64,000 bases of DNA from Thalia democratica (Eukaryota). The notes below the pieces were generated by a model. The model had not been told where the DNA came from. It did no database searches and saw nothing but the letters and a program-made list of their open reading frames with translations. This document shows, piece after piece, positions 7,163-54,723 of this stretch. The DNA is taken from assembly GCA_965202585.1 (NCBI GenBank), contig CBDBBG010000298.1, positions 1 to 64,000 of the forward strand, read 5' to 3'. A program made the position numbers and the translations under genes. Numbering within the stretch: the stretch's first letter is position 1; every line of letters starts with the position of its first letter.

Positions 7163-7170
7163 TTAAAATC

Positions 7171-8612: not shown

Positions 8613-8870
8613 AAAAATTTAGTGCGTACCCTATTTTCGAAAACCTATTTAACTAATGCAAATAATGTTTTACTAAAAATTTAGTGCATACTTTAAGCGG
8701 GTGCGTACCTTATTTTAGAAAACCTATTAAATCAATGCAAATATTGTGTTATTAAAAATTTAGTGCGTACTTTAAGCGGGTGCGTACCTTATTTTAGAAA
8801 ACCTATTTAATTAATGCAAATAATGTGTTATTAAAAATTTAGTGCGTACCTTATGCGGGTGCGTAGTACT
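8613..8870. repeat. 79-bp minisatellite, ~3.3 copies, built on GTGCGTAC (also ~27213, ~43728, ~62433)
   Basis: AAAAATTTAGTGC starts at 8613, 8675, 8754 and 8833 (62, 79, 79 bp apart); full units carry two GTGCRTAC motifs 17 bp apart. Confidence 0.88.
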
Positions 8871-14913: not shown

Positions 14914-17900
14914 TTACTCCTCCTTATTTTCAGGTGATTCGCTTTCTTTCTGAATTTCCTCATTTTCGACCTGAATTTCTTCTTCAACCTGATTTTCCTC
15001 CTGAACTTCAAGTACTTCCTCCACGGCATCTTCCTGAATATTTTCTTCAATATTTTCATTATTTTCTTTTTCTTTTGTTATTTCTTCGACTTTATCTTCA
15101 ACTCGGTCCATCCTCTCACCTAAACTGCACATTGCCTGAAAAAATATTTATGTCTAAAAATATCGTTATTTTTTTGATTATTTATATACTCTTTGAGTGT
15201 AACTAAAAAAATGAAAAAAAATATTATTATTAAAGAGTAGATGTGAACTAATTAGGAACGATTTCGATGTTTTATAACTAAATTAATCAGTTTCATTTTA
15301 AATCATGTTCAGTCTGTTTAATAGCTAAAAATATCTTGAAACAAAAACTTATTTTATTAAAAAAAAAAACTTCGGTCGTTGCAAGTTTCACAAAATTATA
15401 ACACTTAAGTAAAATTTTAAAGAACTTAACTATGGTATGAATTGTGGTATAAATTTTCAATATACTACACACCATTTATTTTACGTTTTTAACAAAAAAA
15501 ATTATAAAAATGGAGCTTTACTATCTTAAAAAAAATCAGGCGTTGTAAGCTTCATAAATTTTTACTCGAAATTTAACAAACAGAGTAATGTTTTAAGAAC
15601 TGGTGTGAACTTCTGCTATGCCGTATTTTACTTTTTCAACAAACTACACACCAGTTATTTTACGCTTTTCATATATAAGCTAGCCACTTATTGTTTTTAA
15701 AAACAAAAACACTTGATAAAGCATGTCACAATTAAAGCAAATATATCTAACCTTTTAGTTATATCATACACACTTGGTAAGATACTTGAAAGGATCAACT
15801 AAACAGTCACGTAAACAACAAAGAAATATAGCAATTTATTTTGAAATAATAATAAGTCATGTAAATAATAACAAGTTATTTAATTTATCAAAAGTTTTCA
15901 ACAAACCCTGTTCAACAAATCGAGCTGTCCCAAAATCTGCTCCAAAATTTGATCGGTTTTATTCTTGGGATTACCCTCATTTGGGGTTGAGGCCCCTTGA
16001 TTTACCTGCGGGGACTCAGCCCTGCTGGGTTCCGGCTCTGGGGTGAGGGTCCCCGAAACTTCCGGGAGCTTCTCGGGCGGTTGCTGGGGCAACGGAGGGG
16101 GCTGGGCGGACTCCACGGTGACCACCCCGATTTTGGGGGTTTTATTTTTTACTTTTGTGGCCAGTTTCTTTCTGGCTTCGGATATTTTTGTTGACGTGGA
16201 CGCCTTCAGGTCCTCGATCGTCGAAATTGAATCCTTGGAAAAAAACATTTACATAAAAGTTTTAGTTTATATTTATAAAAATGTTTTTGCTTTATTCGTT
16301 GAAACTGAATCTTGAATTTTTTTTACTTTTATTTTGTTACTTCTGCTAATTTACTGTTTATCTGATAAACCGTTTCATTTAAAAGCAGTTTTGTACTTTT
16401 TAAAATAAACTATGTTTACAGTGTTTTTAAATATTTATGATGTCCTTATTTACTCTGTTAAAAAGTATGCAGTATTTAGTTGGTGTAAAATCTCAGATGA
16501 ACCAGAAATATATAACAACAATGTTCAACCTAAAATGATTTTATTATCAAATATTAATTAAGTAAAATGTTAATACAAATTTATCATCGCGAAATTTTCA
16601 ACTTAGTTGTTAAATGTAAAAAAGTTGTACTAAATAAATAATTATAAGGAAATATTTAATAAAATCAAACACACTTCTTCATCTGCAGCTAGTTCGTCTT
16701 CGTGGGCAACTTCTTGTAATGTTTTCTTAATTGGTTTGTTTTCTGAAAAAAAATTATAGTTGTTATGTTTTTTTAATCAATTAGGAACTTATTTTCTTAA
16801 ATTAAATGTTTTCTTATTTGGTTTGTTTTATGAATGAAAAAAAGTTTACTACTTCTTGAAAAGTTTTCTTAAGTACTTTATTTTGTTAGAAAAAATACTT
16901 CTTGCAAAGTTTTTTTTTACATACTTCTGAAAATGAAATTATATTTATAACCTATTGTTATGTTTTGTTTTATTAGATTGTTTTCTGTTAAAGTTTTATT
17001 CATTTTATTTACTTCTTACAATGTTTTATTACTTCTTGTTAAGTAGCTATATTTACCAGGAATTTATTTATTGTAAAAAAAAAATAATATCATACTTTAA
17101 TTAAAGATCAACTTTGTTATATACTAATTAAATGTTTCTTCTTTATTTATACTATGTCCTCAACAAATCAAACTTCAAACTGCAATTATACTCTAAACAT
17201 TTTATTCCTCAAGTTTAGTTTATTTCCTTGTAACATTTTATTTTATTCTTAAGAGTTTGCTACACTTGAAAGAAAAAAAAATAAACAACCTAATAAATAA
17301 TTACAAACTAGTCTGAGTTGGAATAAGTTTATTTTGATACTTTTTTGTTTAACTTCCACCTCCGACGCTATCATGACTTACACACAACTTTATGCCTACA
17401 AAACTTTATAAACACTCTAAAACTGTTTGTTCAGAACAAGATAGTTTTAAAATTTCATACAACACTACCCAGTTGTGAAAATAAAAAAAAAGCTAAAACC
17501 ACTGAACAAAGTTTAGTTATTTATATTGAAAACAACTTAAACTAGAACATAACAAGTTATAGTATGTTTTCAGCTGAAGCACTAAACTTGTTATTTTTAA
17601 CCTAAATTTATTATACTTTACGTTTATAAAAAAATTCAGCATTGAAATAAAAACTTAAATATTTTTATTTAGTAAAGCTAGTTGCAAGGCGAAAAGTTTA
17701 ACGAATTGAAATGATACAAATAATAACTTAATAAAAATTGTATGGTAACAGACAATAAAAATATGATGCAACAGAATGTTAAAGACCAAATCAATTTAAT
17801 CTCTTCAAACTTCTTAAAAAACTATAAATTTTTTAATTTCAAAATAATTTTGAGCATAAGGCTACCCTTGTAGTATTAATTTCCTTTTATAAATTTTAAA

Positions 17901-19581
17901 ACTTGAACTTTGTATATATTAACTAGTTTGAACTTAATTATAGTTGAAATGAAGTAGTTTTAATTCAACAACTATTTGATATACTTCTAATAACAACACA
18001 TGTCAATTACAACATAAGAAATAAAATAAACATAGCAAATTCATATTCTACAACATTCTAACAAAGTAAACTTCTAGCTTAAATCAACGTTTTGAATTAA
18101 AAATTAGCTTTTTTATAAGTATGCAATATGCGAATAAATGTAAATAAGATATTTTTTTGCAAAGGGTGTAAACAGTGTAAAACAGTATAAAAAATTAAAG
18201 AAAATTACTATAAAAACTGTAACTAGAAGTCTTGCTGTAAGGAACTAAATTAAAGCTTACAATTTTAAGGGATTATATGACAATTCAAAATCTGACAACT
18301 CAAATTATTAAAAAATTGTAAAAGGGTCTACATCTCAAAAAGTTTTTTGAGAAAATAAAAAATGCTTTTATAGGTCTAAATCATAAGATTTGACGGTAAA
18401 ATATATTTTATTTTATTAAAAGAGATAACTGAAAAAAAACTCAGAAGTATCAAAATTTAAAATGTCGGAATTTAAATAGTCGTGCACCCGTTTTTGATTA
18501 AAAACATTGGTCTAATTATTAAAGCTAATCCTAGACAGAAAAAAATATACTAGATACTAAGTATTAGGGTAGACTGAAACACTAGACCAGAAAACTAAGA
18601 ACTAGGGTAGACTAAAGCATTAGGGCAAAAATGACGACCTGGGCAAATCTAACACCTACCCATAGCACAATTCCACCCAATTTTTTTTATATTTTTAAAC
18701 TGTTTTTATTTTTTTTTATTTTGTATCACTATTTTCCCTAACCCTTACCCTTGGTCGGTAAGCGGTTCTCGGATTTGATCGGGTGGAAATTGATCGCGGG
18801 TTGGAACTGAGCGGTTCCCCCTTCCCATACAAGTAAGTTATTACAAGAACGCATTGTCGTTGTGAGAGTGATACTTTTACAATAATTGTTTTCTTGCACT
18901 AAAGCCAAGGGTCAGAGATATTTAAGAGCGAGAGAAAACTGTCACCCGTACAAAATAACAAACAACCACGTTTTTACATTCTGCAAAGAACATTATTTAG
19001 GTTAATAATAAACAGCTTCTTCTTCAGGGATATTTAAAACAGTGAAATTTGTCAAACAGGGAGATTCGAACTTTGAAAACCGTTTTTAAGAAATTCATAT
19101 TATACTTGACGAAACGTCGTCAGATATCTTATAATAACATCATGTGTTTTTCTTAAAGCTGGTCAAAACATTAGATTTAAAGTTGACAGCCAAAACATTC
19201 ACTTGTGTACAACTGACACCATTTATTACACAGCTAATTTTTTTTTAGAACTGTTTTCATTTATAAGACCCTCTAAGATCAACAACCTTCGAAACTTTTG
19301 TTAAAAATAATCGAAATCAGAAAAAAAAAAATTGTTACGTCAAACAAAAAAAAAACACAAACCACTTAATTTTTACAAAGAAAGCTTGTTTTTCAAACAA
19401 ACGAACTTAATATGGAGTTGTTGGCGTAGCAAACCGGTGCCTGGCACCTGGAACTGTCCTGACTCATGCACGGAGGGGCGGAACTCACGCAGGGCGGAGC
19501 TGGATGCCCGGATGTCATCTTCTCGATCCTGAACTGCTCCATGTGCTCCGGATTGTCGAAATTCGTCTTCCAAACAAGTAC
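14914..19581 (-). CDS. POC1: POC1-like 3' half, copy G2; exons 19581-19407, 18898-18749, 16742-16675, 16233-15907, 15135-14914 (313 aa)
   Basis: Exon 1 reads VLVWKTNFDNPEHMEQ..., which I recognise as the end of the POC1 WD40 domain (QVxVWKxNFD). Exons 4-5 join to LEQILGQLDLLNRAMCSLGERMDRVEDKV, similar to the Poc1 motif as I recall it ([29 protein letters not shown]). All junctions are GT-AG with matching phases (1,1,0,0); the total is 942 nt, open to TAA. Exon 2 and the exon-1 donor are the least certain parts. Functional status is unknown. Confidence 0.8.
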
Positions 19582-22500
19582 CTTTGAAGTTGATAAATTA
19601 TCACTTATAAACAGTAAATGTTCAATAATTTAAAAACATTTTGCTCCGGATTTTCGGAATTTGTCTTCCATACTCATACCTATTATTAAAAAATTAAAAA
19701 TGATCAAGTTATTGGCATTTATGAAGGGATTGATTTGAAAATTTTTGTTATTTAAAAACTTTTGCTCCGGATTGTCGAAATTTGTCTTCCAAACTAATAC
19801 CTTTGAAATGATTAAACTATCAGTTATAAATAAAATTATTAGTAAATACTTTTTATTTGTGAGTTCCATGTGCTCAGGATTGTCGAAATTTGTCTTACAA
19901 ACTAATACCTGTTGATAAGAAAAATAAAGGTAATTAAGTTATTGTCATTTATGAAGAAAAGAACTTAAAAATTTTTATTTTTCAAGACTTTTATGCTCCA
20001 GACTGTTGAAATTCGTCTTTCATACTAAAACCTTTAAAATGATTTAATTATTACTTACAAATAAAAAACTGTAGTTGTTTTTTATTTGTGAGTTCCATAA
20101 GCTCAGAATTGTCAAAACTTGTCTTCAAAACTAATGCCTGGGTTTAAAATTGCATCAAAGTAACTAATTTGGTACACTTATTAACTAAATAATTAAAAGC
20201 TATTGTCATACTTGAATATTTTGCTATAGATTATCGAAACTTTACTTCCAAACTAGCACCCAAGTTTATAAAAATAATTAGTTATCGTATCTTAAATAAG
20301 CACAAAAGAAGAATATCTCTGACTTCATGTATTGTTCGCTCAGAAGCTAATATAGAATTTTTAATTCCAGTTAAAGTTGAAATCTCATCTTTGAAAAATT
20401 TCAGAAAACTAAGAAAATTTTCAAAAGAAACAACCACTTTCTATTTAATCATGATTATTTAATCATGATTGGTATACTTTAGGGCAAAAAACCAATGCAA
20501 CAACTAAATAACACAAAAAAAATGTTTTAGACATGGAATTTTAACAGGCGACGATACAACGAACAAACAAGATTAGTTCAAGAAAACCATGGTAACAACA
20601 TAAAACAAGAATTTCACTCTGAATTAGTTCCATAAATTTGTTGAACTTGATTTAGAGTATAATATATGGATTATTTAATACAAATATACATAATTTGTAT
20701 TAAATGTGCATCTTATAAAACTAAAAACCACAGTATAAATATGAAACTTTGTATGTTACTTTTGTACTTTTAACATTTGCTCATTATATGATGGTAGTAA
20801 TTAAATATATTAAAAACTTAGAAAACAATTTAAAAACAAAAATCTTTAGAAAGCACAACAAACTAATTACTGATTTATCACAGGTATGACCTTAATATTT
20901 AATGAGGTTGAAAACTAAGAATAAAACTTAGAATATTAATTAATTTCAGAATTTAAATTCAAACTTAAGAGTAATTAAAATCATGGACTGGTACAAAAAA
21001 GATTAAAAAATGGCTTTAAGATGTACAAAAAATTAACTCAAGCTTAATGTACAACGTATCTCCGACAACAATTGATATATTGTCAACACAAGACTTAAAG
21101 TTTTCAAAAACATACAATAAAACCTGAGAAAGATATAAAAATAATAATGAATGCATATAAAAATAAAACAAAGGTAAGAACAAAACTAACTGCACATTTA
21201 AAATGACTGTTTTAAGAAAAAAATATGTCATTCATGTATGTAAAAAAGACATATAACCAACGAACTTATTGCGTGAAACAAAATCAACATCATATGGCAA
21301 TAAATTAAAGCAACCCAGAAAACAAAACTATCAAAAGTACGTTCACGCAACTCAAAAAAGGTGAGAAAATATTTATTCGAATTTAATTTAAAGTTTAAGC
21401 AGATTTTTGACTGTCGTATAAATTAAAATGTTTACTCATTTTAAAGATAGAATCAAAACAGTTTATTGGAAATATAAAAAAAAAAGAACTGATAATGTTT
21501 TAACATTACAAATGAAATTAAGAAAGTTTCAAATCAGATATTTTGATTGTTACGTCATTTCAAAGAGTAAGAACATGTAAAAGACTTTGGGTAAAGTTTA
21601 AAGAAAATATTTGAATTAAAATAACTAATAACATGGACAGTTTAATAATTTACGAACATTACAACATGATGTCTTATTTAAACTTTAGACTACAAACCAT
21701 AAAAGTTTAACCATAGAAAATAAACATGAATTGACCCTTACTATTTACTTTTAAACTGAATCAATATCAACCAATTTAAAATAAGAATTAAAATAAATTG
21801 AATATAAGGTCAGTCTATTAAACAAACTCTTAAAGAATATTGTAATCATTTATAAACTACTATCTTAAGTCAATATATTGATTTAAAAATATTTTTTAAC
21901 GGTGATTCATAATTTTGAAACGCTTTCTAACAGCTAAAGTTATAGTTTACTTAAATATATGAAATTGTAGTTTAATACTCAAAAATGACTCTTAACCTTG
22001 TATAAACCAAGAAAATTTAATATGATTATGAATAGGTAAATAAAATCAATAAAAATACAAACTGTTGAGTTACACGCTCATCAGGTGTAGTACAACTACA
22101 GCTATAGAAACTGAATGGCTTTAAAATCTTCACATTTATTCACAATATTCTACGATTTGTAATATTAAGTACAACTTTAATAAGTACTGGAAATAAGTAC
22201 AACTTTTCTTAAACAATAAGGTTAAAAATAAAGCAAAAAATAAAGCAATTTCAGCTGATGACAGTAATACGACTTAGCTTTAGAAAAGTAAAAACTAAGT
22301 AAAAAAGCTATAAAAGTCCTTAAATGGTATATTTGAAGTTGCTTTGTTTTATTTTGGACAAAAATCTAATTTAAAGTGTTTTTAATAATGACAAATTAAC
22401 AATGTTTTAGACATGGAATTTTAACAGGTGACGATACAACGAACAAACAAGATTAGTTCAAGAAAACCATGGCAACAACATAAAACAAGAATGTCACTCT

Positions 22501-25500
22501 GAACTAGTTTCATAAATTTGTTGAACTTGACTTAGAGTATAATATATGGATTATATAATACAAATATACATAATTTGTATTAAATATCCATCTTATAATA
22601 CTAAAAACCACAGTATAAATATGATCTTTGTATGTTACTTATGTACTTTTAACATTTGCTCATTAAATGATGGCAGTAATTAGTTGTATTAGAAATTAAA
22701 TTAAGAACAAAAATCTTTAAACAGAACAACAATTTACTTACTGATTTTTCACAAATATGATTTCAATATTTAACGAGATTGAAAACCTAAAACGCTCAGA
22801 AATTATTAAAATAAAACTTAAAAGAGTATTCAATATAACAGACTGGTACAAAAAAGACTAAAAGTGGGTTCATTTAAAACTAAAATCTTTAGTGAATACT
22901 TTGTAAGGTAAGGAATTTGTTTAAACAAGTATGATGCAGACATTTAAAAACTAGATTTAAAGATTCAATTGAATTTTATATTGGTAATAAACAGACTTTT
23001 TTAGTAAAATTGTCTAAGTAGATAAGGTAGTTCAAAGCAGGATTATTTGTAGTTATGAAGTGAAATTAAAGGAAAACAGTATTAAATCCGTAAACAACTG
23101 CTTCACTTAAATTAAGTATAAACACATGCACAAATTTTCAATAATCTAACGTTTAATTGCATCCAAAATCAAACCAGCCAAATAATTCTACAGATCATTA
23201 ATAATAAACAAAAACAATAATTAACATACGAATAACTTTGCAATAACTAAGAAAAAATTAGAACGTAAATGATAAAACATTAAAAGAAGCTCTTCATCAA
23301 TACATCTTGACACTTTAAAGCATATGTTATTAAAATTTAAAGAAAAATACCATACTTAATGAGACTATATAATGACGTAATAATAGTGTGTAATAAGACT
23401 AAATAAATTTCAACTAAAACACCTAAACTAAATGGATAAAAAAAGATATTTCGTTACTTTAATAATGCATACAATTTTATGTGGACAAGCTAAGACGTTT
23501 ATCATGAAAAATTTGAACTTGACTGAAAGTTATTTGCGCTTAAGAGAAAATGCTTTATTACTTGCACTTAAAAGAACTAAAACTATTTACAAATATTATT
23601 AACTAAAGAGAACCCGTGGAAAAGTTTTTAAATAAACCTTGGTATTTAAATTGTAAAGTTATTTTACAGTAACATCAACAAAACAATGAAGCGTTAACTA
23701 AAAATACATCTAAACCATGAGTAAAACAAACTTTATACTATAAAATTCACTTTTAAACCAAAATTTATCGAAGTAGAATTAAATCAAGAAAAAAATAAAT
23801 TTACAATATAATAACGGATTAGACTTATAAACAAACTTTAGAACAAACTCATGAAAAGCCAATTTTTTTTTAAACAGACTTTCAAGTAATTCTACAGTAA
23901 TAACAATTAAACTTAGTAACAACATTAACTAAAACATGATCCGTTTTTGGTTGGTAAGATGACCCGTAAATAATTTAAAACTAAAGAATATAAGGCTACA
24001 TAAATCCCCTTCACAGTTTTTTAACCTTTCTTTATATATAGATTTGAAAAAAGTACAGTAAAAAAATATAGATTCAGAAAAGTTTGAACCAAGTAGACGA
24101 GCTTTAAAACATGTAAAACTAAGGAAATTTCCAAACTAGTTGACAGAAAATAAAACCAAATTTTATAGAAGTAAATGGCACTATAAACAATTAAAATAAA
24201 ATACGACCTCGAAATTGAAATGGTTACTTAATTGGCATAGTTTTATAAGTATTTGGTTTAGAGTCATTATATTAGTGTAAAATAAGGTCATACTTATCGA
24301 TTTTGTTTATTACAAACCGTTTATTGTTTGAAACATAAGGTAAAATATTTATTAATAATTGGAATTAATTACATAATAGGTAAAATTCTTTTGTTCATTT
24401 AAATATGAAAAAAGGATATTTATATTAAATTGATGCTCTTTCAAACATACAAAATAAGAAGTTTCAATTCTTTTAAAGTGACTTAACAGCAAGTTTATGA
24501 TTAGATAAGACATTAGCAAAAATTATGTATGATATACACAACCTTGTAGACCAAAAACTTAAATGGCACAACATATACTACAGCTGAATAATAACATTAA
24601 ACAATGAGTCATAAATTCTCTAAGTGGGATGTATATTTGAACTGTAATTATTACTTGAAAAGACAGTTAATCTTTTAAGTTTATAGATATCAACATCATA
24701 TGAACCAGCGCAACAAGATGTTAATTAATGATTAAGTATTAATCTGTTAATTTACTTGCAGCAATGAAATATTTCAGAGTTAATTGCCATATATATATTT
24801 ATATCTATTATGTATATATACATAGTTTAATTAAGATACGCCTCGTCTAATACTTATTATGTACATATATTTAGTGTTGTTAGTGTCTATATTAATTATT
24901 CAAATAATATGCATATTACATATACAAATATAGTGTTAGTAAAAATTACTAAGTTAAACTGTATAAGACTACCGGGTTATGACGTAACATTTATAATTAA
25001 GTAAAAATACATGAAAAATTGTGGACAAAACTGTATTTCGTTAGTGGCTAATTTTCAAAGATTGCCAAAATTTATTTCCACAAATTAAGACGTAAACATT
25101 GACTTATGTAAACGGGAAATGTACATGGAAAAATTTAGCTTTGTTTCCATCTAAGTGACATAAATATCCTACACACAATATTGCAAAGATACTACTTACA
25201 AAAGTATACGATTTGTACTTTTAAGAATGCAATGTATTACATTAACTAACAATTATAGCATTTTTTGCCCAAACACTTTTTTTAAAGACAAACGACGCTT
25301 AAAACTAAGTAAGTAATCTACTTACGCTCATGAGTAATTTGTACAGGCTTCATCTGTTATCAATAAATACAACGTGGTGTGAAATTTGTCTGTTATACTC
25401 AATGATTTAAATATTAGTATTAAAACAGGGTCGCCACTCGTTTTTCTAAAGTTTTCCGAATTTCTTCCAGGATTTTAAAAATACACATGTTTGGGTCTAT

Positions 25501-28500
25501 TTTTAGTTTAAAGTTAAGTTTAAGGTAAGAAACTGTGTTAAGTAGTATAAAAATATTAAAAAGATACTGTAAAGCTACTTTAAGTATGTTTTTTAATAAA
25601 TTAAAACTTTTATTATGAAAAAACTTTTCTATTTATATGATAGATGTTTTGAGTAAAATCAAAATTTTACTACTAAACACATATAAACCATTAAAAATTC
25701 CACATTATTTTTAGTGGTTTTTGCCTAAATTGTCAAACTCCAGGTTTTTCCAGGTAAAGTGGCAGCCCTGTTAAAATCAAGTTTAGTTGCGCTAAGAAGT
25801 ACGAGCACATTCACTCGTACATCCAAGTCATAGGGTGCCAACAAACAGAGTGACGGGGCTTAAAAAACAATAGCAAAACAGATCAAAGTAGTAGAAGTGA
25901 GTTGGCGTGGTGTAAATAACTCTTCATCCTTTTTTAGGACCTATTTTAAGCGCTTAAATCATTATTGGTGACTAAAACATTATTACAAAAGAATAAAAAT
26001 TCAAATTAGTGCATTTAATCGTTTTCGGATTTTTAGTAGCAGATAAAAAATTAAAATTACAGTTACTTTAATGAAGTTAAATTAAACCCCAATCGTTGGA
26101 AAAGCCAGTAAAACAAAACGGAATGGACGTTGTTTAGATCAGAGTTTATCTAAAGCGGACAATATCGCCCTTTATAGGAGGCAAAAAACAGTGAGAAATT
26201 GAAAACGTAAATGGGTAATTCGACAGTAAAGGGACTTTTTAACTCGTGCCAAGGGTTAAATTTAGAAATTAGTTTGGAAAACCAATTTCAAGTTTGGAAA
26301 ACAATTCAAAATGTTTAAGAACTAATCCTATAAGCTTAGAAACAGTAAGGAAATAAACTAAAAATAAAATAGTATCTCAACAAGAAGATAAAATGGTTAA
26401 TTCAACCGAGAATTTACAAAAAAGTTTGTACAATTGATGCAAGTGGTTTGTAAATTTACCTAACTTTATGTGGACAATTTAAGACGTAAATATTTTTTAG
26501 AAGTATTTAAAACAAGTGGCTCATGACTAATTTATATCTGTTATCTTTCATACAACATTAGAGTGAAACTAGTCTGTTGTATCTTATAACTTCTAGTGAG
26601 AATAAAGTTTAGTTATGACTTAGAAGTACTAGCACACTTACTCGTACATCCAAGTCATAACTCAAAAAGGTGCCGACCAGCAGAGTAACCGGGCCTAAAG
26701 GACAAGAATTAAAAAAAAACTAAGGGCAGGCCGGAGAGATGACAGGTGCGAAGCACCGTGTCATCGACCGGCCGTAGCCCTTTGTTTTTTTTTAATTCTT
26801 GTCCGCTACCTCAACACTTACTAATCAAACTCATCAATACAAAACCACTCAGTTAATAATTGAAAAACTATAACTGATATTACCGTCAGGCCTTTAATGG
26901 TTTCACATCAATAAGTTAGATCACATAAGCTCAAGGTTAGTAAAAGATAACAGATAAAGACCGTACAAATACAACGCAATAACGTATATTTGTTTGGCAG
27001 TTACGCTACTCACGGTCCATTTGACAGAAAAAGAGGGCCTTCAAGAAAAAAGGCCGTAAAGAAAAAGAGAAAAGGAAAAGATGAAAATTTTTTCGCCGGC
27101 GGAGCCGGCGAAATGCCTTAAAAAATAAATTTTAATAATCTCCATCAAAAAATCTCATCACATTTTCGGTTTGGGGGAATCCCCATTTTTGAAAAATATG
27201 GGTGGGGGGCCTGAAAAATTTAGTGCGTACCCTATTTTCGAAAACCTATTTAACTAATGCAAATAATGTTTTACTAAAAATTAAGTGCATACTTTAAGCG
27301 GGTGTACCTTATTTTAGAAAACCTATTAAATCAATGCAAATATTGTGTTATTAAAAATTTAGTGCGTACTTTAAGCGGGTGCGTACCTTATTTTAGAAAC
27401 CTATTTAATTAATGCAAATAATGTGTTATTAAAAATTTAGTGCGTACCTTATGCGGGTGCGTAGTACTTAAAGAAAATCTTTACTTATAACAGAGAGAGT
27501 GTTATTAAAAACTTAGTGTTTAATTCTTAGAATGCGTACATTATAGATGCCTTTAATTCGTTAAAATTACATGTTTAAGTTAGGGTTAAAACCAAAAACA
27601 AATGAATACAGATACTACATCATCCTGGTTAAGTACCTAATGTTTTACATATACATGGAAAAACAGTTCATCAATCTCATAGAGAGGTGTACTTTTTAAT
27701 GACAGAAAATATAAAAATATACAAATATAAAAAGAAACAGACCTTTTAAATGTGTACACTGACAAATCTATTTATATGATTTAACTGTTTTTCTATGTAT
27801 ACTCAAACAATAGTCAGTTAACTTGCTTACGTAAATTGATTTTACTTAGATAACCTTTTAAAAACAGTATAAAATTTAAACTAATCAAAAATAAAAAACC
27901 ACTTGAGATTCATCTAAACAATTAAAATTACTTTGATTCAAGTAGTAACTATATTCTTGTCAAATAAAACTTTAAAATGGTAAAAAAAATTTTATATTCT
28001 TGTTTAACTTCAGTTTTATACTGTTCCTACTAAAGGATATCACTTTACTTGTCATGTAACTTATTAAGCTAAAGTTTATCCATGATAGTTAAATTGGTCT
28101 CAATGTAAAGTAATTATTTAGCAATCTCATAAATACAAAGGTTTGAGCTGTTACTACCATCACTACTTATTAACTGGTATACTTTAATTTACTTTATATA
28201 TTCACTAATAGACTTAAACTTTGAATGCTTACTTAATTGCTTTGTTTAATCACTGATCTCAGACAACTTATTGTGTGTTTCTTAAAGTGTGCATACAAAT
28301 TAAAGGTGTTTGAACTTATCATTTCAATACATTGTTACAAACTAAAACAGTTAAACCATACTACTTTGTGTCATTAACATATGTTTATTAGCCTGTAGTT
28401 CATTTCAAAGTTTGTCAAATACTTGCATCATTTGAAATCTTTATGGCTGTATATTTATACTATTACCAAAATTGAGTCTTTACATTTGTCATATACATAT

Positions 28501-35910: not shown

Positions 35911-36090
35911 CCAACTTAATATGGAGTTGTTGGCGTAGCAAACCGGTGCCTGGTACCTGGAACTGTCCTGACTCATGCACGGAGGGGCGGAACTCACGCA
36001 GGGCGGAGCCGGATGCCCGGATGTCATCTTCTCGATCCTGAACTGTTCCATGTGCTCCGGATTGTCGAAATTCGTCTTCCAAACAAGTAC
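33544..36090 (-). pseudogene. POC1: POC1-like 3' half, copy G3; exons 36090-35916, 35418-35351, 34890-34564, 33772-33544; lacks exon 2; apparent +1 frameshift in the acidic tail
   Basis: Same exons as G2 minus the symmetric 150-nt exon 2, so the frame is kept. The exon-5 frame ends at 33560 (...EEISERKRIT*) because of one extra base in TGAAATTTCC; this could be a homopolymer error, so pseudogene status is uncertain. Confidence 0.65.
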
Positions 36091-42000: not shown

Positions 42001-45000
42001 GTTTGGGTCTATTTTTAGTTTAAAGTTTAGTTTAAGGTAAGAAACTGTGTTAAGTAGTATAGAAATATTAAAAAGATACTGTAAAACTACTTTAAGTATG
42101 TTTTTTAATAAATAAAAACTTTTATTATGAAAAAAAATTTCTATTTAAATGATAGATGTTTTGAGTAAAATCAAAATTTTACTACTTAACACATATAAAC
42201 CATTGAAAATTCCATATTATTTTTAGTGGTTTTTGCCTAAATTGTCAAACTCAAGGTTTTTCCAGGTAAAGTGGCAGCCCTGTTAAAATCAAGTTTAGTT
42301 GCGCTAAGAAGTACGAGCACATTCACTCGTACATCCAAGTCATAGGGTGCCAACAAACAGAGTGACGGGGCTTAAAAAACAATAGCAAAACAGATCAAAG
42401 TAGTAGAAGTGAGTTGGCGTGGTGTAAATAACTCTTCATCCTTTTTTAGGACCTATTTTAAGCGCTTAAATCATTATTGGTGACTAAAACATTATTACAA
42501 AAGAATAAAAATTCAAATTAGTGCATTTAATCGTTTTCGGATTTTTAGTAGCAGATAAAAAATTAAAATTACAGTTACTTTAATGAAGTTAAATTAAACC
42601 CCAATCGTTGGAAAAGCTAGTAAAACAAAACGGAATGGACGTTGTTTAGATCAGAGTTTATCTAAAGCGGACAATATCGCCCTTTATAGGAGGCAAAAAA
42701 CAGTGAGAAATTGAAAACGTAAATGGGTAATTCGACAGTAAAGGGACTTTTTAACTCGTGCCAAGGGTTAAATTTAGAAATTAGTTTGGAAAACCAATTT
42801 CAAGTTTGGAAAACAATTCAAAATGTTTAAGAACTAATCCTATAAGCTTAGAAACAGTAAGGAAATAAACTAAAAATAAAATAGTATCTCAACAAGAAGA
42901 TAAAATGATTAATTCAACCGAGAATTTACAAAAAAGTTTGTACAATTGATGCAAGTGGTTTGTAAATTTACCTAACTTTATGTGGACAATTTAAGACGTA
43001 AATATTTTTTAGAAGTATTTAAAACAAGTGGCTCATGACTAATTTATATCTGTTATCTTTCATACAACATTAGAGTGAAACTAGTCTGTTGTATCTTATA
43101 ACTTCTAGTGAGAATAAAGTTTAGTTATGACTTAGAAGTACTAGCACACTTACTCGTACATCCAAGTCATAACTCAAAAGGGTGCCGACCAGCAGAGTAA
43201 CCGGGCCTAAAGGACAAGAATTAAAAAAAAACTAAGGGCAGGCCGGAGAGATGACAGGTGCGAAGCACCGTGTCATCGACCGGCCGTAGCCCTTTGTTTT
43301 TTTTTAATTCTTGTCCGCTACCTCAACACTTACTAATCAAACTCATCAATACAAAACCACTCAGTTAATAATTGAAAAACTATAACTGATATTACCGTCA
43401 GGCCTTTAATGGTTTCACATCAATAAGTTAGATCACATAAGCTCAAGGTTAGTAAAAGATAACAGATAAAGACCGTACAAATACAACGCAATAACGTATA
43501 TTTGTTTGGCAGTTACGCTACTCACGGTCCATTTGACAGAAAAAGAGGGCCTTCAAGAAAAAAGGCCGTAAAGAAAAAGAGAAAAGGAAAAGATGAAAAT
43601 TTTTTCGCCGGCGGAGCCGGCGAAATGCCTTAAAAAATAAATTTTAATAATCTCCATCAAAAAATCTCATCACATTTTCGGTTTGGGGGAATCCCCATTT
43701 TTGAAAAATATGGGTGGGGGGGGGCCTGAAAAATTTAGTGCGTACCCTATTTTCGAAAACCTATTTAACTAATGCAAATAATGTTTTACTAAAAATTTAG
43801 TGCATACTTTAAGCGGGTGCGTACCTTATTTTAGAAAACCTATTAAATCAATGCAAATATTGTGTTATTAAAAATTTAGTGCGTACTTTAAGCGGGTGCG
43901 TACCTTATTTTAGAAAACCTATTTAATTAATGCAAATAATGTGTTATTAAAAATTTAGTGCGTACCTTATGCGGGTGCGTAGTAATTAAAGAAAATCTTT
44001 ACTTATAACAGAGAGAGTGTTATTAAAAACTTAGTGTTTAATTCTTAGAATGCGTACATATAGATGCCTTTAATTCGTTAAAATTACATGTTTAAGTTAG
44101 GGTAAAACAAATGAATACAGATACTACATCATCCTGGTTAAGTACCTAATGTTTTACATATACATGGAAAACAGTTCATCAATCTCATAGAGAGGTGTAC
44201 TTTTTAATGACAGAAAATATAAAAATATACAAATATAAAAAGAAACAGACCTTTTAAATGTGTACACTGACAAATCTATTTATATGATTTAACTGTTTTC
44301 TATGTATACTCAAACAATAGTCAGTTAACTTGCTTACGTAAATTGATTTTACTTAGATAACCTTTTAAAAACAGTATAAAATTTAAACTAATCAAAAATA
44401 AAAACCACTTGAGATTCATCTAAACAATTAAAATTACTTTGATCAAGTAGTAACTATATTCTTGTCAAATAAAACTTTAAAATGGTAAAAAAATTTTATA
44501 TTCTTGTTTAACTTCAGTTTTATACTGTTCCTACTAAAGGATATCACTTTACTTGTCATGTAACTTATTAAGCTATGATAATTAAATTGGTCTCATTGTG
44601 AAGTAATTATTTAGCAATCTCATAAATACAAAGGTTACTACCATCACTACTTATTAACTGGTATACTTTAATTTACTTTATATATTCACTAATAGACTTA
44701 AACTTTGAATGCTTACTTAATTGCTTTGTTTAATCACTGATCTCAGACAACTTATTGTGTGTTTCTTAAAGTGTGCATACAAATTAAAGGTGTTTGAACT
44801 TATCATTTCAATACATTGTTACAAACTAAAACAGTTAAACCATACTACTTTGTGTCATTAACATATGTTTATTAGCCTGTAGTTCATTTCAAAGTTTGTC
44901 AAATACTTGCATCATTTGAAATCTTTATGGCTGTATATTTATACTATTACCAAAATTGAGTCTTTACATTTGTCATATACATATAACACAACACAGCAAG

Positions 45001-48000
45001 TTGTTGATAAATGCTTATTAGTCAAACATATGAACAAAAGAAATTATTGATAGATAAAAGAACAGAAAGAAGTTAGTGATAGAAGAAGAGAAAAATTAAA
45101 CAAAGGTGAGAATAAACCTCATACACTAACAACCTTTAAATTTTGCTTGCTGTGAAGTGCTTTGTAAATATATGAGTGTAAACTTAAAATTTTGGAACAT
45201 TTTGTTTACTAGCAAACCTAATCCTGATATGGTTTAACTGTTTTCTTTTGTAAAAAAATGAATAAATAAAACTTTATAACAATTAAAACAGTTTTGAAAC
45301 TATTAACAATTTTGTTTTATGATTACTCTTCCTACTTATCTTTTATGCACACTTTAAGTAACTCTTATTACAAGTTATTAATTTATAAATATATAAACTA
45401 CATTAATACAATCAGAACTAACCAACTTAATTTTTATGTTGTAAATAAACTTCTACACTTACATTAGCTTGCTGTCTCTTTGGGCTTCATTCATAAAAAC
45501 AAAACTTCTTTACACAAGCTTATAAAGTTTACCACAAATGTTGCTACTTTTAAGTGATTTTATTTATTTTTGAGTCTTATTTAAGTTTTCTCTTAATTTA
45601 AGGTAGCCTTGTAATCTTAGGAGAATGAAGCCCAACAAAACAAATATATGTTTATGGTATCAACTCTATAAAAAGAAAGAACTAGTCTGAATTTGTGCAA
45701 AATTTAATTAACATATAAAGCTTAATGTTATTTAAGCATGAGAACTCAAAAATTTAATAGTAACAAAAGGACTTAAATAAATAGAAAATCTAAAACTTAA
45801 AGACAAATATCAAGATTTATTGTAAATACCCAAAAAACCTTAACTTTGTTACTAAACATTCAACTAGTATTACTGGTAACCCTAGCAAAAAATACTAAGT
45901 TTTGCACAAATTAAAACAATCTAATTAACTATTAAACAAACTAACTTGAACAGCTGCTGTAGTAGGTACTCATCTTTAATCAGAATCCAAAAAAGTGTGA
46001 TCCATTGCCTAATCTTAAGATGTAGGAGAAAGCCAAAGTTACAACTTATAAAGACCTTTGAAAAAACCTAGAAGTTTAAAAATTTTACAGAGGTTCAAAA
46101 GATTTTTCATAAGAATTCTTTTGAATTTTTCTCTACTCAGTTCACTTTATAATGATGTTTCAAAGATTTCAAAGACTGAAATGCAAGTTTTTAAGCCTCT
46201 TGATGATTTTTTTTTCATCAAGTAAGCCAATTGATCTTGTCTGAACATGTCATGCTTCTAGTATAAAAGCTTGTCACAGATTTATAAATAAAGATATATG
46301 CATTCTGTGATGAATCAGAAAATAAAATAAAGATTTTTTCAAAGGTTTTGCATGAGAAAAATAATATAGATTATCAACATAAACTTTTAAGACTGTTGAA
46401 TGCCAAACTAGGTCAAATGCTTTCTTAAAATTACTCACACAATATAGAAATATAAGAATTCTTTTGAATGTTTCTCTACTTATTTCACTTTATATTGATG
46501 TTTCAAAGATTTCAAAGACTGATGTGCAAGTTTTTAAAGCCTCTTGATGATTTTTTTTTGCCTCAAGTAAGTGCATTCAAGCCAATTGATCTTGCTGAAC
46601 ATGTCATGTTTGTGAGTATAAAAACTTATCACAATTTTTATAAATAAAGATATATGATTCTGTGATGAACTAGAAGATTAAATAAAGAATTTTTTCAAAG
46701 CTATTGCATGAGAAAAATAATATAAATTATCAACATAAACTTTCAAGACTGTTGAATGCCAAACTAGGTCAAATGCTTTCTTAAACTTACTCACACAATG
46801 TAGAAACATATAAGACTTTTAGAAGATAAAATGAGCAACAATCATCAAGTTTTATCTTCAAAAATATTGACAATCAAATAGAGTTTGCTTAAGTACAAAG
46901 CTCACATAAACAGTATAAAAAAGAAAAAAAAAAGTTTCAGAGTTACTTCACACCTACAGCATCTAAGGTGTTTTACTACAAGTGCTTTTCTCAAAAGAAT
47001 ATTCATTGAAAAAAATATTTTGCAAAGTACTATTTTATTGTGATGTCACATTAAAATGTAAGACTTTAGAGAATTCATAAAAACTACAAATTGAAACACT
47101 ATCTTAGCATGGCAGGGTGGTTTTTAGCTTTTTCGAAAATAAAATGCTTTATTTTACATAATGTTAAACCTTAAACTTTTTTTTGTAAAAGATAAACTGT
47201 TTTAATTTCATTCTTATTATTCATTCTTTTTTAAGTTTTTCGTAGTTTCTACCTTTTTACTACATTGGCGATAACTGGTTAACATATTGTATAATATTTA
47301 AGCTACAGTAATTCATTAAGCTCGTATAAACTACATTGACAACTTATAAAGACATATAAATTAAGCGTTTAACTCTTAATTTTACAAAATAGTTTTCTTT
47401 TTTTGTTTTTTTTTTTTGTTTTGTATAAGTTTATTACTTAACAATTTGTACAAGATTGATTATATTTAGCAAAAAGCCTTTATCTCATCAGGTAATAGCA
47501 TTAAATTTAACTTTTGCAAAATCATTTTACTTATTATTTAATTTGAATCGTTTTGCCATATTAGCCAAAACTATACAGTTTTTGTAGTCATTGATATAAC
47601 AACTTTTTGAAGCAGGTAGAAAATAAAAAAACCATATTGTGCATAGTGAGTGAATGCTAAATAAAGACACACTTATCAAAATATTTATGTCAAATTTTAA
47701 ATGTGATCAAAATGAAACTTGTCAAATTCCAAGTTTGTTGGCTGACTTGTTTATAAAAACCTACGTTCTGTTTAAAAAAAATACATTAGCAATTATTACA
47801 AACTTTAACACTAGTAACCGTTAGTTTTAGTATTATTTTTTACTATTAGATCTATTTTAATGAAACATTCATACTAGTTGAAAGTTTAAAAGAATTACAA
47901 TGTTAGAGCAAAAGGTCTTTCTATATACTTAATTGTTTAAATTGGACACATTTTTTTGTTTTTAATAACAAGAACTTTTTATTATTTACGTTTTTTTAAG

Positions 48001-51000
48001 GAACAAATTGAGATCGCTACATATTTCGAATAAGTTTTGTTTCTAAAACTATGAAAGTTAAAGATGCGTAAGACCCGGTCTAGACAGAAAAATACCAAAT
48101 AGACAGAAATAAGAAACTTTTAATTTTGAAATTCTAACTTAAAAGAGCAATTGCTAATACAGTTATCATGCAATCAAAAATAGCACCCTGCAGCAATTGT
48201 ATAGTTTATAATTAATCTTTCTACATTCACTAATGTCAAACCTACACTTTTTAGTCTTCATTCTATTATCAACTTTCTATAGTATGTAATCAGCTTGTTT
48301 TATTCCTTAATTTAAAGCCACTAATGTTTTTTATTTTAATATAACAGTTTCACGTTCAGTTTTTTAAGAGCCTAAACCCATAGTGTTTGTTTAGTATTTT
48401 ATTCAAATCATTGATTAACTTTCTAACTAACATAATTTACAATTTCTTACCTACTTGTTTTGCTTTATAGTATCTTCCATGTTTTGTTTAACTTTTATTT
48501 TTCAGATTTAAATTGTGACTGAAGATCCATTAAAGGGTTAAACTTAGTTTCTTAAATAAAAATATTAAACAATTAATGTTGTATATTAATTATTTACTCA
48601 AAACTTTTGTTTTTATAATTTTTACTTTTAACAACTACCAAAACATGCGTTTTGAACAAGAACATAAACTTGTGAATTTTTGGGAGATTAGTATAGATTA
48701 ATCTCATAGAAAATATATCAGGTTGTTAAAAGATTTTTTTAGTGAAATGTTTTGTATTGTAAAATTTAATTTAAAACTTTATCCAAAACTGTCGAAAATA
48801 TGTAAGCCAAGCAAAATTTTGTCTTTTTAATGTGCTCAGGGTTGCCACTGGTTTTTGATAAATTTCTTTCAGCTTTTTGAAAAGACACGTTTTTGGGTTT
48901 GATTTTAGTTTCAAATTGAGTTGAACTTTAAAAACTGTTATAAGTAGTATAACAACATTGAAAAGATACTGTAAAGCTAATTTAAATGTGTTTTTCAATA
49001 AAAAATATTTTGATGATGACAAAGTTTTCTATTTATATGATAGATTTTTCGTTTCAAATCAATACATACTACTAAAAACGTAAAAATTGTTTAAAATTCC
49101 GAGTCTTTTTTAAATGTCTCAAATTCCAGGTATTTTTCAAGGTTTTTAGCCTAAATTGTCGAATTCCAGATTTTTCAAGGATTCCAGGTTTCGTGGCAAC
49201 CCTGTGTACTGATGATTTTTGTAATGCTTGAGCTTTTTAATTTGAGATTTGAGTAAATATATAAAACAGTTTACATAAGTTGATGATTAGAGTTTTTGAA
49301 AGATTTATCATGTGCGTATTTAGTATTTAGTTTAAATATAAAGTATATATCAAATAAGCTGTTGCCAAATGCACAACTAAAAAGAATTTTTACACATATC
49401 AAAAAATATAAAAACAATTCATTAAGGTTTATAAAATTTGTAAAAGATAGTTTCATATATTTTTAGAAAAATTACTTAAACACTGTGATTGTAGGAATTT
49501 ACAAAAATGTTTGATACATTAGGTAAGTAATTTATTAAATAAAAGTTCTAACATCAGAATTTTTTTTTGTAAAAAGAATTTATACAAAAACATAATAAAA
49601 GCAGCGAAAATTAATAAAATATCACTAAAGTTTGGTCGAAAGTTAATAAACTGCGTAAATCTCAACAAAATTAAAGTAAAGAAATTTTGGACAACTTAAT
49701 CGTTGTTAAATTAATTAAATAATCCAGGAATGATCAAAAATGTGCAAACAGAATAGTACTGCCATATGTATATGAATAAAAAATCATTTTAGTACAATAA
49801 TTACAAAAAAGTTTCAACTTGTGTAAGAACAATGTTAGTAAAAGCACTTTAGGTGAAATAGACAATTTTTTTTTTGTTAAAAGCTTAATTGAACTTTTAG
49901 GTTTTTTTTAATTTTCTAAAACTTTCATTTGATGTCACACAATAAACCACAATTATTATTTTTTAATAAATTTTAACTTTGAGGTTTTTAGAATTAAATT
50001 TCAAAAACAAACAAAATAATTACTCCTCCTTATTTTCAGGTGATTCGCTTTCTTTCTGAATTTCCTCATTTTCGACCTGAATTTCTTCTTCAACCTGATT
50101 TTCCTCCTGAACTTCTACTGCTTCCTCCACAGCATCTTCCTGAATATTTTCTTCAATATTTTCATTATTTTCTTTTTCTTTTGTTATTTCTTCGACTTTA
50201 TCTTCAACTCGGTCCATCCTCTCACCTAAACTGCACATTGCCTGAAAAAATATTTATGTCTAAAAATATCGTTATTTTTTTGATTACTTATATACTCTTT
50301 GAGTGTAACTAAAAAAATGAAAAAAATATTATTATTAAAGAGTAGATATGAATTAATTAGGAACGGTTTCGATGTTTTATAACTAAATTAATCAGTTTTT
50401 GTGACACAATTATCATTTTAAATCATGTTCAGTCTGTTTAATAACTAAAAAAATCTTGAAACAAAAACTTATTTTATTAAAAAAAAAAACTTCGGTCGTT
50501 GCAAGTTTCACAAAATTATAACACTTAAGTAAAATTTTAAAGAACTTAACTATGGTATGAATTGTGGTATAAATTTTCAATATACTACACACCATTTATT
50601 TTACGTTTTTAACAAAAAAAATTATAAAAATGGAGCTTTACTATCTTAAAAAAAAAATCAAGTACTGTAAGCTTCATAATTTTTACTCGAAATTTAACAA
50701 ACAGAGTAATGTTTTAAGAACTGGTGTGAACTTCTGCTATGTTGTATTTTACTTTTTCAATAAACTACAAACAAATTATTTTACGCTTTTCATATATAAG
50801 CTAGCCACTTATTGTTTTTGAAAACATAAAAAAAAACACTTGATAAAGCATGTCACAATTAAAGCAAATATATCTAACCTTTTAGTTATATCATATACAC
50901 TTGGTAAGATACTTGAAAGGATCAATCAAAAACAGTCACGCAAACAACAAAGAAATATAGCAATTTATTTTGAAATAATAATAAGTCATGTAAATAATAC

Positions 51001-54000
51001 ATGTTATTAATTTATCAAAAGTTTTCAACAAACCCTGTTCAACAAATCGAGCTGTCCCAAAATCTGCTCCAAAATTTGATCGGTTTTATTCTGGGGATTA
51101 CCCTCATTTGGGGTTGAGCCCCCTTGATTTATCTGCGGGGACTCGGCCCTGCTGGGTTCCGGCTCTGGGGTGAGGGTCCCCGAAACTTCCGGGAGCTTCT
51201 CGGGCGGTTGCTGGGGCAACGGAGGGGGCTGGGCGGACTCCACGGTGACCACCCCGATTTTGGGGGTTTTATTTTTTACTTTTGTGGCCAGTTTCTTTCT
51301 GGCTTCGGATATTTTTGTTGACGTGGACGCCTTCAGGTCCTCGATCGTCGAAATTGAATCCTTGGAAAAAAACAATTACATAAAAGTTTTAGTTTTTATT
51401 TCAATATTTATAAAAATGTTTTTGCTTTATTCGTTGAAACTGAATCTTGAAATTATTATTTTTATTTTGTTACTTCTGCTAATTTACTGTTTATCTGATA
51501 AACTGTTTCATTTAAAAGCAGTTTTGTACTTTTTTAAATAAACTATGTGTTTACAGTGTTTTAAATATTTATGATGTTCCTGTTTACTCTGTTAAAAATT
51601 ATGCAGTATTTAGTTGGTGTAAAATCTCAGATGAACAACAAATATATAACAACAATGTTCAACCTAAAATGATTTTATTATCAAATATTAATTAAGTAAA
51701 ATGTTAATACAAATTTATCATCGCGAAATTTTCAACTTAGTTGTTAAATGTAAAAAAAGTTATACTAAATAAATAATTTTAAGGAAATATTTAATAAAAT
51801 CAAACACACTTCTTCATCTGCAGCCAGTTCGTCTTCGTGGGCAACTTCTTGTAATGTTTTCTTAATTGGTTTGTTTTCTGAAAAAAAATTGTAGTTGTTA
51901 TGTTTTTTTAATCAATTAGGGACTTATTTTCTTAAATTAAATGTTTTCTTATTTGGTTTGTTCTTTGAATGAAAAAAAGTCTACTACTTCTTGAAAAGTT
52001 TTCTTAATTACTTTATTTTGTTAGAAAAAATACTTCTTGCAAAGTTTTTTTTACATACTTATGAAAATGATATTATATTTATAACCTATTGTTATGTTTT
52101 GTTTTATTAGATTGTTTTCTGTTAAAGTTTTATTCATTTTATTTACTTCTTACAATATTTTATTACTTCTTGTTAAGTAGCTATATTTACCAGGAATTTA
52201 TTTATTGTAAAAAGAAATTAATATCATACTTTAATTAAAGATCAACTTTGTTATATACTAGTTAAATGTTTCTTCTTTATTTATACTATGTCCTCAACAA
52301 ATCAAATTTCAAACTGCAATTATACTCTAAACATTTCATTCCTCAAGTTTAGTTTATTTCCTTGTAACATTTTATTTTATTCTTAAGAGTTTGCTACACT
52401 TGAAAGCAAAAAAAATAAACAACCTAATAAATAATTACAAACTAGTCTGAGTTGGAATAAGTTTATTTTGATACTTTTTTGTTTAACTTCCACCTCCGAC
52501 GCTATCATGACTTATATACAACTTTATGCCTACAAAACTTTATAAACACTCTAAAACTGTTTGTTCAGAACCAGATAGTTTTAAAATTTCATACAACACT
52601 ACCCAGTTGTGAAAATAAAAAAAAGCTTTAACCACTGAACAAAGTTTAGTTATTTATATTGAAAACAACTTAAACTAGAACATAACAAGTTATAGTATGT
52701 TTTCAGCTGAAGTACTAAACTTGTTATTTTTAACCTAAATTTATTATACTTATACGTTTATAAAAAAATTCAGCATTGAAATAAAAACTTAAATATTTTT
52801 ATATAGTAAAGCTAGTTGCAAGGCGAAAAGTTTAACCAACGAAGGAATTGAAATGATACAAATAATAACTTAATAAAAATTGTATGGTAACAGACAATAA
52901 AAATATGATGCAACAGAATGTTAAAGACCAAATCAATTTAATCTCTTCAAACTTCTTAAAAAACTATAACTTTTTTTAATTTCAAAATAATCTTGAGTAT
53001 GTGGCTACCCTTGTAGTATTAATTTCCTTTTATAAATTTCAAAACTTGAATTTTGTATATAATAATTGTTTTGAACTTAATTATAGTTGAAATGAATTAG
53101 TTTTAATTCAATAACTATTTGATATACTTCTAATAACAACACATGTCAATTACAACATAAGAAATAAAATAAACATAGCAAATTCATATTCTACAACATT
53201 CTAACAAAGTAAACTTCTAGCTTAAATCAACGTTTTGAATTAAAAATTAGCTTTTTTATAAGTATGCAATAGGCGAATAAAATGTAAATAGGATATTTTT
53301 TTGCAAAGGGTGTAAACAGTGTAAAACAGTATAAAAAATTAAAGAAAATTACTATAAAAACTGTAACTAGAAGTCTTTAAGGAACTAAATTAAAGCTTAC
53401 AATTTTAAGGGATTATATGACAATTCAAAATCTGACAACTCAAATTATTTAAAAATTGTAAAAGGGTCTACATCTCAAAAAGTTTTTTGAGAAAATAAAA
53501 AATGCTTTTATAGGTCTAAATCATAAGATTTGACGGTAAAATATTTTTTATTTTATTAAAAGAGATAACTGAAAAAAAACTCAGAAGTATCAAAATTTAA
53601 ATTGTCGGAATTTAAATAGTCGTGCACCCGTTTTTGATTAAAAACATTGGTCTAATTATTAAAGCTAATCCTAGACAGAAAAAATATACTAGATACTAAG
53701 TATTAGGGTAGACTGAAACACTAGACCAGAAAACTAAGAACTAGGGTAGACTAAAGCATTAGGGCAAAAATGACGACCTGGGCAAATCTAACACCTACCC
53801 ATAGCACAATTCCACCCAATTTTTTTAAATATTTTTAAACTGTTTTTATTTTATTTAAATTTTCTATCACTATTTTCCCTAACCCTTACCCTTGGTCGGT
53901 AAGCGGTTCTCGGATTTGATCAGGTGGAAATTGATCGCGGGTTGGAACTGAGCGGTTCCCCCTACCCATACAAGTAAGTTATTACAAGAACGCATTGTCG

Positions 54001-54021
54001 TTGTGAGAGTGATACTTTTAC
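35911..54021. repeat. Tandem macro-repeat unit C
   Basis: Colinear with 531-18880 of unit A; landmarks include the hairpin at 43212, MITEs at 41938 and 48837, and exon 5 at 50020-50241. Confidence 0.95.
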
Positions 54022-54723
54022 AATAATTGTTTTCCTGCACTAAAGCCAAGGGTCAGAGATATTTAAGAGCGAGAGAAAACTGTCACCCGTGCAAAATAAC
54101 AAACAACCACGTTTTTACATTCTGCAAAGAACATTATTTAGGTTAATAATAAACAGGTTCTTCTTCAGGGATATTTAAAACAGTGAAATTTGTCAAACAG
54201 GGAAATAAAACAGGGAGATTTGAACTTTGAAAACCGTTTTTAAGAAATGCATAACATACTTGACGAAACGTCGTCAGATATCTTATAATAACATCATGTG
54301 TGTTTCTTAAAGTTGGTCAAAACATTAGATTTAAAGTTGAAAGCCAAAACATTTACTTGTGTACAACTGACACCATTTGTTACACAGCTAATGTTTTTTT
54401 TTAGAACTGTTTTCATTTATAAGACCCTATAAGATCAACAACCTTCGAAAAATAATCAAAATCAGAAAAAAATTGTTACGTCAAACAAAAAAAAAAACAC
54501 AAACCACTTAATTTTTACAAAGAAAGCTTGTTTTTCAAACAAACGAACTTAATATGGAGTTGTTGGCGTAGCAAACCGGCGCCTGGTACCTGGAACTGTC
54601 CTGACTCATGCACGGAGGGGCGGAACTCACGCAGGGCGGAGCCGGATGCCCGGATGTCATCTTCTCGATCCTGAACTGCTCCATGTGCTCCGGATTGTCG
54701 AAATTCGTCTTCCAAACAAGTAC
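50020..54723 (-). CDS. POC1: POC1-like 3' half, copy G4; exons 54723-54549, 54039-53890, 51877-51810, 51360-51034, 50241-50020
   Basis: All five exons and splice sites are intact and the frame is open to TAA at 50020; ORF-track entries 51025..51375 and 50020..50238 overlap exons 4 and 5. Confidence 0.78.

Follow-up and report, generated by a model that had tools for sequence, protein, structure and literature searches.

A window of 64,000 nucleotides from Thalia democratica (GenBank assembly GCA_965202585.1, contig CBDBBG010000298.1, positions 1 to 64,000) consists throughout of one head-to-tail macro-repeat, each complete unit of which carries, on the minus strand, the last four exons of what is, by its best structural match, a gene of the POC1 type (POC1 is a conserved centriole protein). 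These exons encode the final strand of a WD40 propeller, a linker, a heptad coiled coil and an acidic tail, and the exons for the remainder of the propeller are absent from the units. Our preferred but tentative reading, held with somewhat less than even confidence, is that the interior copies are relics that lie beside, or apart from, one functional gene; we infer that they originated by partial duplication and lack an independent function.

Self-BLAST of the window placed the units at offsets of 18.6-18.9 kb (long form) or 16.5 kb (short form), in colinear blocks that are 97.7-99.2% identical. The 64 kb hold 3.4 such units; as the window both begins and ends within a unit, the array must extend beyond 64 kb. 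We thus see at least three head-to-tail multi-kilobase units of high identity that extend past the region, as in a macrosatellite, each holding only the last four exons rather than a complete expressible gene; no promoter or first exon was identified in the units. Self-BLAST delimits copy 1, a long form of 18.6 kb (14914-33543), and, together with exon anchors, the partial unit that we call copy 0 (1-14913), the short-form copy 2 of 16.5 kb (33544-50019) and the long-form copy 3, which is cut by the window end (50020-64000). The window therefore contains three complete gene fragments and one partial one, all on the minus strand. Its G+C content is 24-32%, and at fine scale there are only a few G+C islands in each unit, four of which coincide with the minus-strand gene fragment, the remainder being a non-coding block at ~25.7-27.3 kb. 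An earlier note on this DNA, made from its letters alone, had counted at least four copies; that count stands for exon 1, which occurs at four places (537-711, 19407-19581, 35916-36090 and 54549-54723), and complete exon sets number three.

On the minus strand, a gene model built from stop-free stretches and splice sites has AG/GT borders throughout, phases that agree and an open frame. In copy 1, exon 1 (19407-19581) begins VLVWKTNFDNPEHMEQF and encodes the last WD40 strand (VLVWKTNFD), the first ATG and a stretch rich in proline, cysteine and serine, between an AG/GTA acceptor and a TTAA/GT donor. Exon 2 (16675-16742), which has canonical splice sites, is followed by exon 3 (15907-16233), the longest, which carries the linker and the start of the coiled coil and ends DQILEQILGQLDLLNR; exon 4 (14914-15135) begins AMCSLGERMDRVEDKV and encodes the remaining coiled coil, the acidic tail and the stop codon. 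By inspection, the coiled coil shows an unbroken 3-4 hydrophobic spacing over ~32 residues, spanning the last intron. The order of last WD40 strand, linker, heptad coiled coil and acidic tail recurs in each fragment: copy 2 (exons at 35916-36090, 35351-35418, 34564-34890 and 33560-33772) and copy 3 (54549-54723, 51810-51877, 51034-51360 and 50020-50241), both likewise on the minus strand, share the exon structure of copy 1, and copy 0 has exon 1 only. Copy 2 additionally carries three insertions, of which two, of 3 nt each, are in frame; the third, of 1 nt, replaces or truncates the final residues of the acidic tail.

Public contigs compared with positions 14880-20300 included spliced RNA contigs, from two marine metatranscriptome runs, that confirm the three introns. 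Their joints, at 15134>15906, 16233>16677 and 16742>19407, connect the four exons in order, with exon 1 joined directly to exon 2. The earlier note had proposed a frame of five exons, the last three of which are our exons 2, 3 and 4, and a product of 313 aa; the RNA passes straight from 16742 to 19407, and the four exons together span 792 nt, or 263 codons, yielding 263 aa (250 aa from M14, the first ATG). Its placing of an in-frame ATG at 19542, codon 14, was correct, no earlier ATG being present in exon 1, and the open frame that it described persists in the complete copies, with the tail of copy 2 altered by the 1-nt insertion.

The assignment to POC1, also made in the earlier note, is supported by the boundary between exon 1 and the sequence spliced onto it in the relative from which the RNA derives. 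The RNA contig of this relative extends 213 nt past the exon-1 acceptor and enters a WD40-type stretch first; its 30 letters upstream of exon 1 translate to DFFATGGQDD, which directly precedes (K)VLVWKTNFD. We joined these 10 aa from the relative's mRNA to 14 aa from exon 1 of the window, and the resulting 24-aa junction peptide found its best PDB match in the POC1 centriolar protein homolog 9qzc_AM (residues 327-347, E 3.9e-8), with VWKTNFD matched exactly; against RACK1 and Sec13, which are generic WD40 proteins, the match was ~100 times weaker. The signature ...FA.GG...VWKTNFD is found at the last blade of POC1. Since the last blade of POC1 is the best match of the junction peptide, the fragment is, on this similarity, the 3' half of a POC1-type gene. 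The predicted domain order of the gene, with the coiled coil read by inspection, agrees with POC1 as described (POC1A/POC1B, Pix1/2, Tetrahymena Poc1 and the 9qzc structure), in which the last-blade ...FATGG...VWKTNFD is followed by a linker and a C-terminal heptad coiled coil. Published descriptions give every POC1 protein a WD40 propeller, then a linker that is disordered and, at the C-terminus, a coiled coil built of heptads (PMC2982836, PMC11564547). Unlike POC1, the array units are without WD40 blades save for the final strand, and there are many tandem copies here, the norm given in the earlier note being one or two genes.

The linker and coiled coil gave no sequence match to annotated POC1. 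Pfam searches with every exon returned no family; the coiled coil matched only GCN4-type zippers in the PDB, without significance, and PDB sequence searches with exons 1, 3 and 4 returned nothing or, again, only non-significant GCN4 zippers. A HMMER search with the longest exon against 1.84 billion representatives recovered only a low-complexity repeat protein and fragments of close relatives (P0001 and P0002); annotated POC1 was not among the matches. When the exon-1 stretch, P0004 and the last exon were used in word-index searches, no full-length relative appeared, only genomic and metatranscriptomic fragments of close relatives; JGI metagenomes searched with the longest exon and with a degenerate pattern for the WD40/exon-1 junction contained no relatives, and three exons submitted to the ESM Atlas had no meaningful neighbour there. 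The literature and its supplements, searched for the VWKTNFD-type motif, yielded nothing.

The units contain no propeller exons. Of the seven blades of the WD40 propeller, only the final strand, VLVWKTNFD, is encoded. We looked for the others by motif, composition, Pfam and 30-nt searches. WD/GH motifs were not found within the open stretches; among the stop-free stretches of 22 aa or more in 19640-33540, 318 in all, none resembled propeller sequence, had a protein-like composition or matched Pfam; and the 30-nt piece of the WD40 exon in the relative's mRNA had no match in the window, either at up to 3 mismatches or by short-word BLAST. The claim of the earlier note that WD40 exons are lacking upstream in the unit is thereby borne out across the 13.9 kb between fragments. 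Its structural reading as a whole, namely multicopy POC1-type 3' halves in propeller-less units, agrees with the self-BLAST, the exon model, the propeller searches and the PDB match.

The RNA contigs differ from the window in the longest exon at 16 positions and by a 3-nt indel. The same 16 differences occur in the genomic TARA/ENA contigs L001-L004, which are 95% identical to the window in this exon and 88-90% identical in introns. Because they carry these L001-type differences, we assign the RNA contigs to a sister lineage and reject them as transcripts of Thalia democratica itself, for which our search returned no RNA run. Since exon 1 is joined to a WD40 exon in the sister-lineage RNA, that RNA is an ordinary message of full length. 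Exon 3 of copy 1 is conserved in TARA contigs L001-L004, L006 and L007, and an orthologue of exon 4 is present in L005. L007 is a window-type copy (97-98% identical), L006 represents a more distant lineage in the longest exon, and L005 covers the last exon and its flanks at 74% identity. Between lineages, the ratio of non-synonymous to synonymous substitution rates (dN/dS) is 0.13-0.32 for the longest exon and 0.27 for the last exon, falling to ~0.05 in the first 24 coiled-coil codons of the latter, so that the tail half of the protein is clearly constrained between lineages. As a separate observation, L001-L007 comprise at least four related lineages of tail exons in TARA Oceans metagenome contigs, which places the source organism within a marine plankton group that has several close relatives. 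The fragment P0002 is a frameshifted open reading frame call on the spliced transcript of a more distant relative (a TARA/MERC fragment), to which no contig could be traced.

How such an array may have arisen can be sketched as follows. A partial tandem duplication of a POC1-type centriole gene would have taken in its 3' part, from a point within the intron before the last-blade exon through ~10 kb or more of 3' flank, and unequal exchange would then have amplified the duplicated segment into a macrosatellite. The interior units would thus have come to hold four intact-looking exons, with no propeller and no known promoter. Full-length POC1 could come only from a copy that adjoins WD40 exons, which would lie either past coordinate 64000, where the array would have its upstream edge, or at another locus. 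Interior copies would most likely be by-products of macrosatellite formation, and their open frames and their excess of synonymous changes would reflect youth and exchange with the functional copy rather than a role of their own. The relic reading is favoured by the array structure, the exon model, the POC1 match, the lack of propeller exons and the sister-lineage message, and also by features of the copies themselves: the longest exon, in which the changes within the array number 1 synonymous to 4 non-synonymous; the frameshifted tail of copy 2; and a tract in copy 2 that looks imported (35521-35827; see below).

Several observations weigh against regarding the copies as relics, chief among them the pattern of substitutions. 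Pairwise Nei-Gojobori dN/dS among the copies is 0.17-0.26. When expectations were drawn from the local intron substitution spectrum, at the 2.47% divergence of copies 1 and 3, this pair should show 17.6 non-synonymous and stop changes and 6.7 synonymous ones; 6 were observed in each class. Synonymous changes thus match expectation, and non-synonymous ones reach only about a third of what the introns predict (P=0.0014 for the deficit). Over all copies, 14 of the 23 variable sites are synonymous and 9 non-synonymous; variants specific to single copies include codon 46 (C/Y) and codon 171 (K/Q). Moreover, three of three complete copies retain every splice site and an intact coiled coil, and the gene body is 2-4% diverged between copies, and hence not brand new, with just one mild disabling change. 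The signal is unevenly spread. Exon 1 has 4 synonymous changes and 1 non-synonymous change, and copy 0 differs from copy 1 there at 3 synonymous sites; the short exon has the same 4 and 1, all inside the diverged, seemingly imported tract of copy 2; the last exon shows a mixed pattern; and the longest exon looks relaxed within the array relative to its dN/dS between lineages. The core of the coiled coil is invariant among the copies and nearly so across lineages. Taken together, the substitution pattern, heterogeneous and drawn from 23 variable sites, hints at constraint, and the data would fit selection on the copies or variation brought by exchange with a functional copy alike.

The depletion of non-synonymous changes relative to both local introns and synonymous sites, the intact splice sites and frames and the conserved core of the coiled coil (dN/dS ~0.05) are what one would expect if the interior copies were themselves expressed genes for a propeller-less POC1 of 250 aa, a possibility that we consider doubtful. 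The earlier note had suggested a coiled-coil-only POC1 of this kind, made from transcribed or trans-spliced units, that could titrate native POC1. Transcripts could start at a unit-internal promoter or arise by read-through, a spliced leader could be joined to the orphan exon-1 acceptor, and translation could begin at codon 14, which is the first ATG past the acceptor and lies in frame. The product, linker plus coiled coil, could then pair with full-length POC1 or with partners such as MDM1 and tune the assembly of centrioles or basal bodies; in human cells, POC1 forms homo- and heterodimers, and binds MDM1, through its coiled coil (PMC11564547). However, the only junction upstream of exon 1 in any RNA is that with the WD40 exon, in the sister lineage; the longest exon (1:4) appears relaxed in the array and the tail of copy 2 is frameshifted; and the apparent selection could have been conveyed by gene conversion from a functional copy. 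In human cells, furthermore, the coiled-coil region alone fails to reach centrioles (PMC11564547), and a free product of this type could, by analogy, plausibly sequester partners. The fuller version of this idea, in which selection would maintain a spliced-leader-capped family of propeller-less 250-aa POC1 proteins that would partner or antagonise full-length POC1 in a dosage-tunable manner at centrioles or basal bodies, perhaps in the germline, likewise strikes us as rather unlikely.

Still less probable, in our estimation, is that the copies serve as interchangeable 3' modules, with upstream WD40 exons spliced in cis to exon 1 of the first unit or of later ones. The units share strand and orientation, their acceptors are intact, and the relative splices a WD40 exon to exon 1, all of which fits such an arrangement; one metatranscriptome also contains four short RNA unitig variants over the exon-1 segment, which may represent several expressed copies or population polymorphism. 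Use of the later units, however, would call for read-through of the upstream terminal exons and for introns of >18 kb, would gain no diversification from copies that are 98-99% identical, and would depend on an upstream edge of the array that lies outside the window. That the array is an artefact, whether a collapsed or expanded assembly of a single locus or a set of units whose propeller exons escaped a search confined to the four approaches named above, is very improbable, given the substitutions that are private to individual copies and the structural differences between them (a 2.2-kb indel, a 98-bp duplication and the diverged tract), the presence of the sequence in independent DNA runs and in L007, and the exceptional conservation of the POC1 WD40 domain (PMC2982836), which should be evident in six-frame translation and is not.

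The additional exon of the earlier note, its exon 2 (18749-18820), we reject: it is skipped in the spliced RNA, it lies inside a high-copy retroposon and it is missing from copy 2. The retroposon, which resembles a short interspersed nuclear element (SINE), occupies 18681-18861 of intron 1 on the minus strand, in gene orientation, and recurs at ~53820-54000. The DNA word depth of the 18681-18861 bin is 104,357, compared with ~250-480 around it, and loose contig ends there show an A-rich tail; on the strength of this depth and tail, we regard the element as a SINE-like retroposon present in very many copies; marine RNA runs, too, contain it abundantly. The frame remained open despite the spurious exon because its 72 nt are a multiple of three, and a transposon fragment can thus masquerade as an in-frame exon. 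Copy 2 is without the whole 2.2-kb stretch that bears the retroposon and has a short intron instead. Its intron-1 tract at 35521-35827 (minus strand) is only ~85% identical to copies 1 and 3; this tract and the neighbouring short exon look like a patch imported from an older or external diverged copy.

Divergence differs within the unit. The gene body (14.7-19.6 kb) is 2-4% different between any two copies, the retroposon-bearing intron being as diverged as the remainder of it, whereas the other 14 kb (19600-33500 and equivalents) differ by 0-1%. The non-genic block may be homogenised more often, or the genic block may have extra donors elsewhere in the genome; the contrast bears on how such arrays homogenise. 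Immediately upstream of exon 1 (19582-20260, minus strand) lie mini-repeats of ~98-120 bp, each carrying a decayed copy of the acceptor together with 38-50 nt from the start of exon 1. A unit has three to six of them, the window shows 17 matches, against 0 expected, and Tandem Repeats Finder reports a period of 229. In copy 3, the acceptor region and start of exon 1 are duplicated once more, perfectly, over 98 bp (54724-54821, minus strand), which indicates that the mini-repeat array is still changing. The mini-repeats look like products of slippage; that they might act as decoy acceptors is speculation.

The GC-richer non-coding block of copy 1 (25700-27470, no strand assigned) contains two copies of a hairpin motif, a foldback and 77-79-bp tandem repeats, and carries no coding signal. 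We considered its GC-rich islands at 25.7-27.3 kb as hidden exons and rejected them: they have no open frames and no Pfam matches, and they show hairpin and tandem-repeat structure. The motif is a conserved 28-nt sequence (25804-25831 and 26631-26658) that occurs twice per unit and eight times in the window, inside a near-perfect ~19-bp hairpin that encloses GTAAGT or GTGAAT (folding z-score -2.8; no Rfam match), and may represent the end of a transposon or a gene for a small RNA. Scanning the window for Rfam families and tRNAs returned nothing. The 77-79-bp tandem repeats beside the block are located at 27223-27463, 8506-8963, 43701-44079 and 62326-62783.

Genic macrosatellites are tandem arrays of multi-kilobase units each of which carries a gene, human D4Z4/DUX4 being an example. 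The present array resembles them in its head-to-tail units of 16-19 kb, its 98-99% identity and the gene-derived segment in each unit, and the structural variants between units point to unequal exchange. Unlike genic macrosatellites, each unit here has only the 3' half of a multi-exon gene, introns included, and divergence between copies is 3-6 times higher in the gene body than in the remainder of the unit. As with truncated duplicates of the Sd-RanGAP type, an analogy drawn in the earlier note, a duplicate deficient in a domain could act on the pathway of its parent; unlike Sd-RanGAP, what is missing here is the N-terminal domain and the promoter, and the duplicate is an array, known from sequence alone, rather than a single copy.

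If the copies are silent, they would constitute a well-documented case of a genome turning pieces of a gene into macrosatellites. If expressed, they would amount to a natural amplification of a conserved core centriole protein reduced to its dimerisation domain, offering a ready-made test of the POC1 coiled coil apart from the propeller, and spliced-leader trans-splicing may then be a means by which promoter-less, 5'-truncated duplicates are rescued into new genes.

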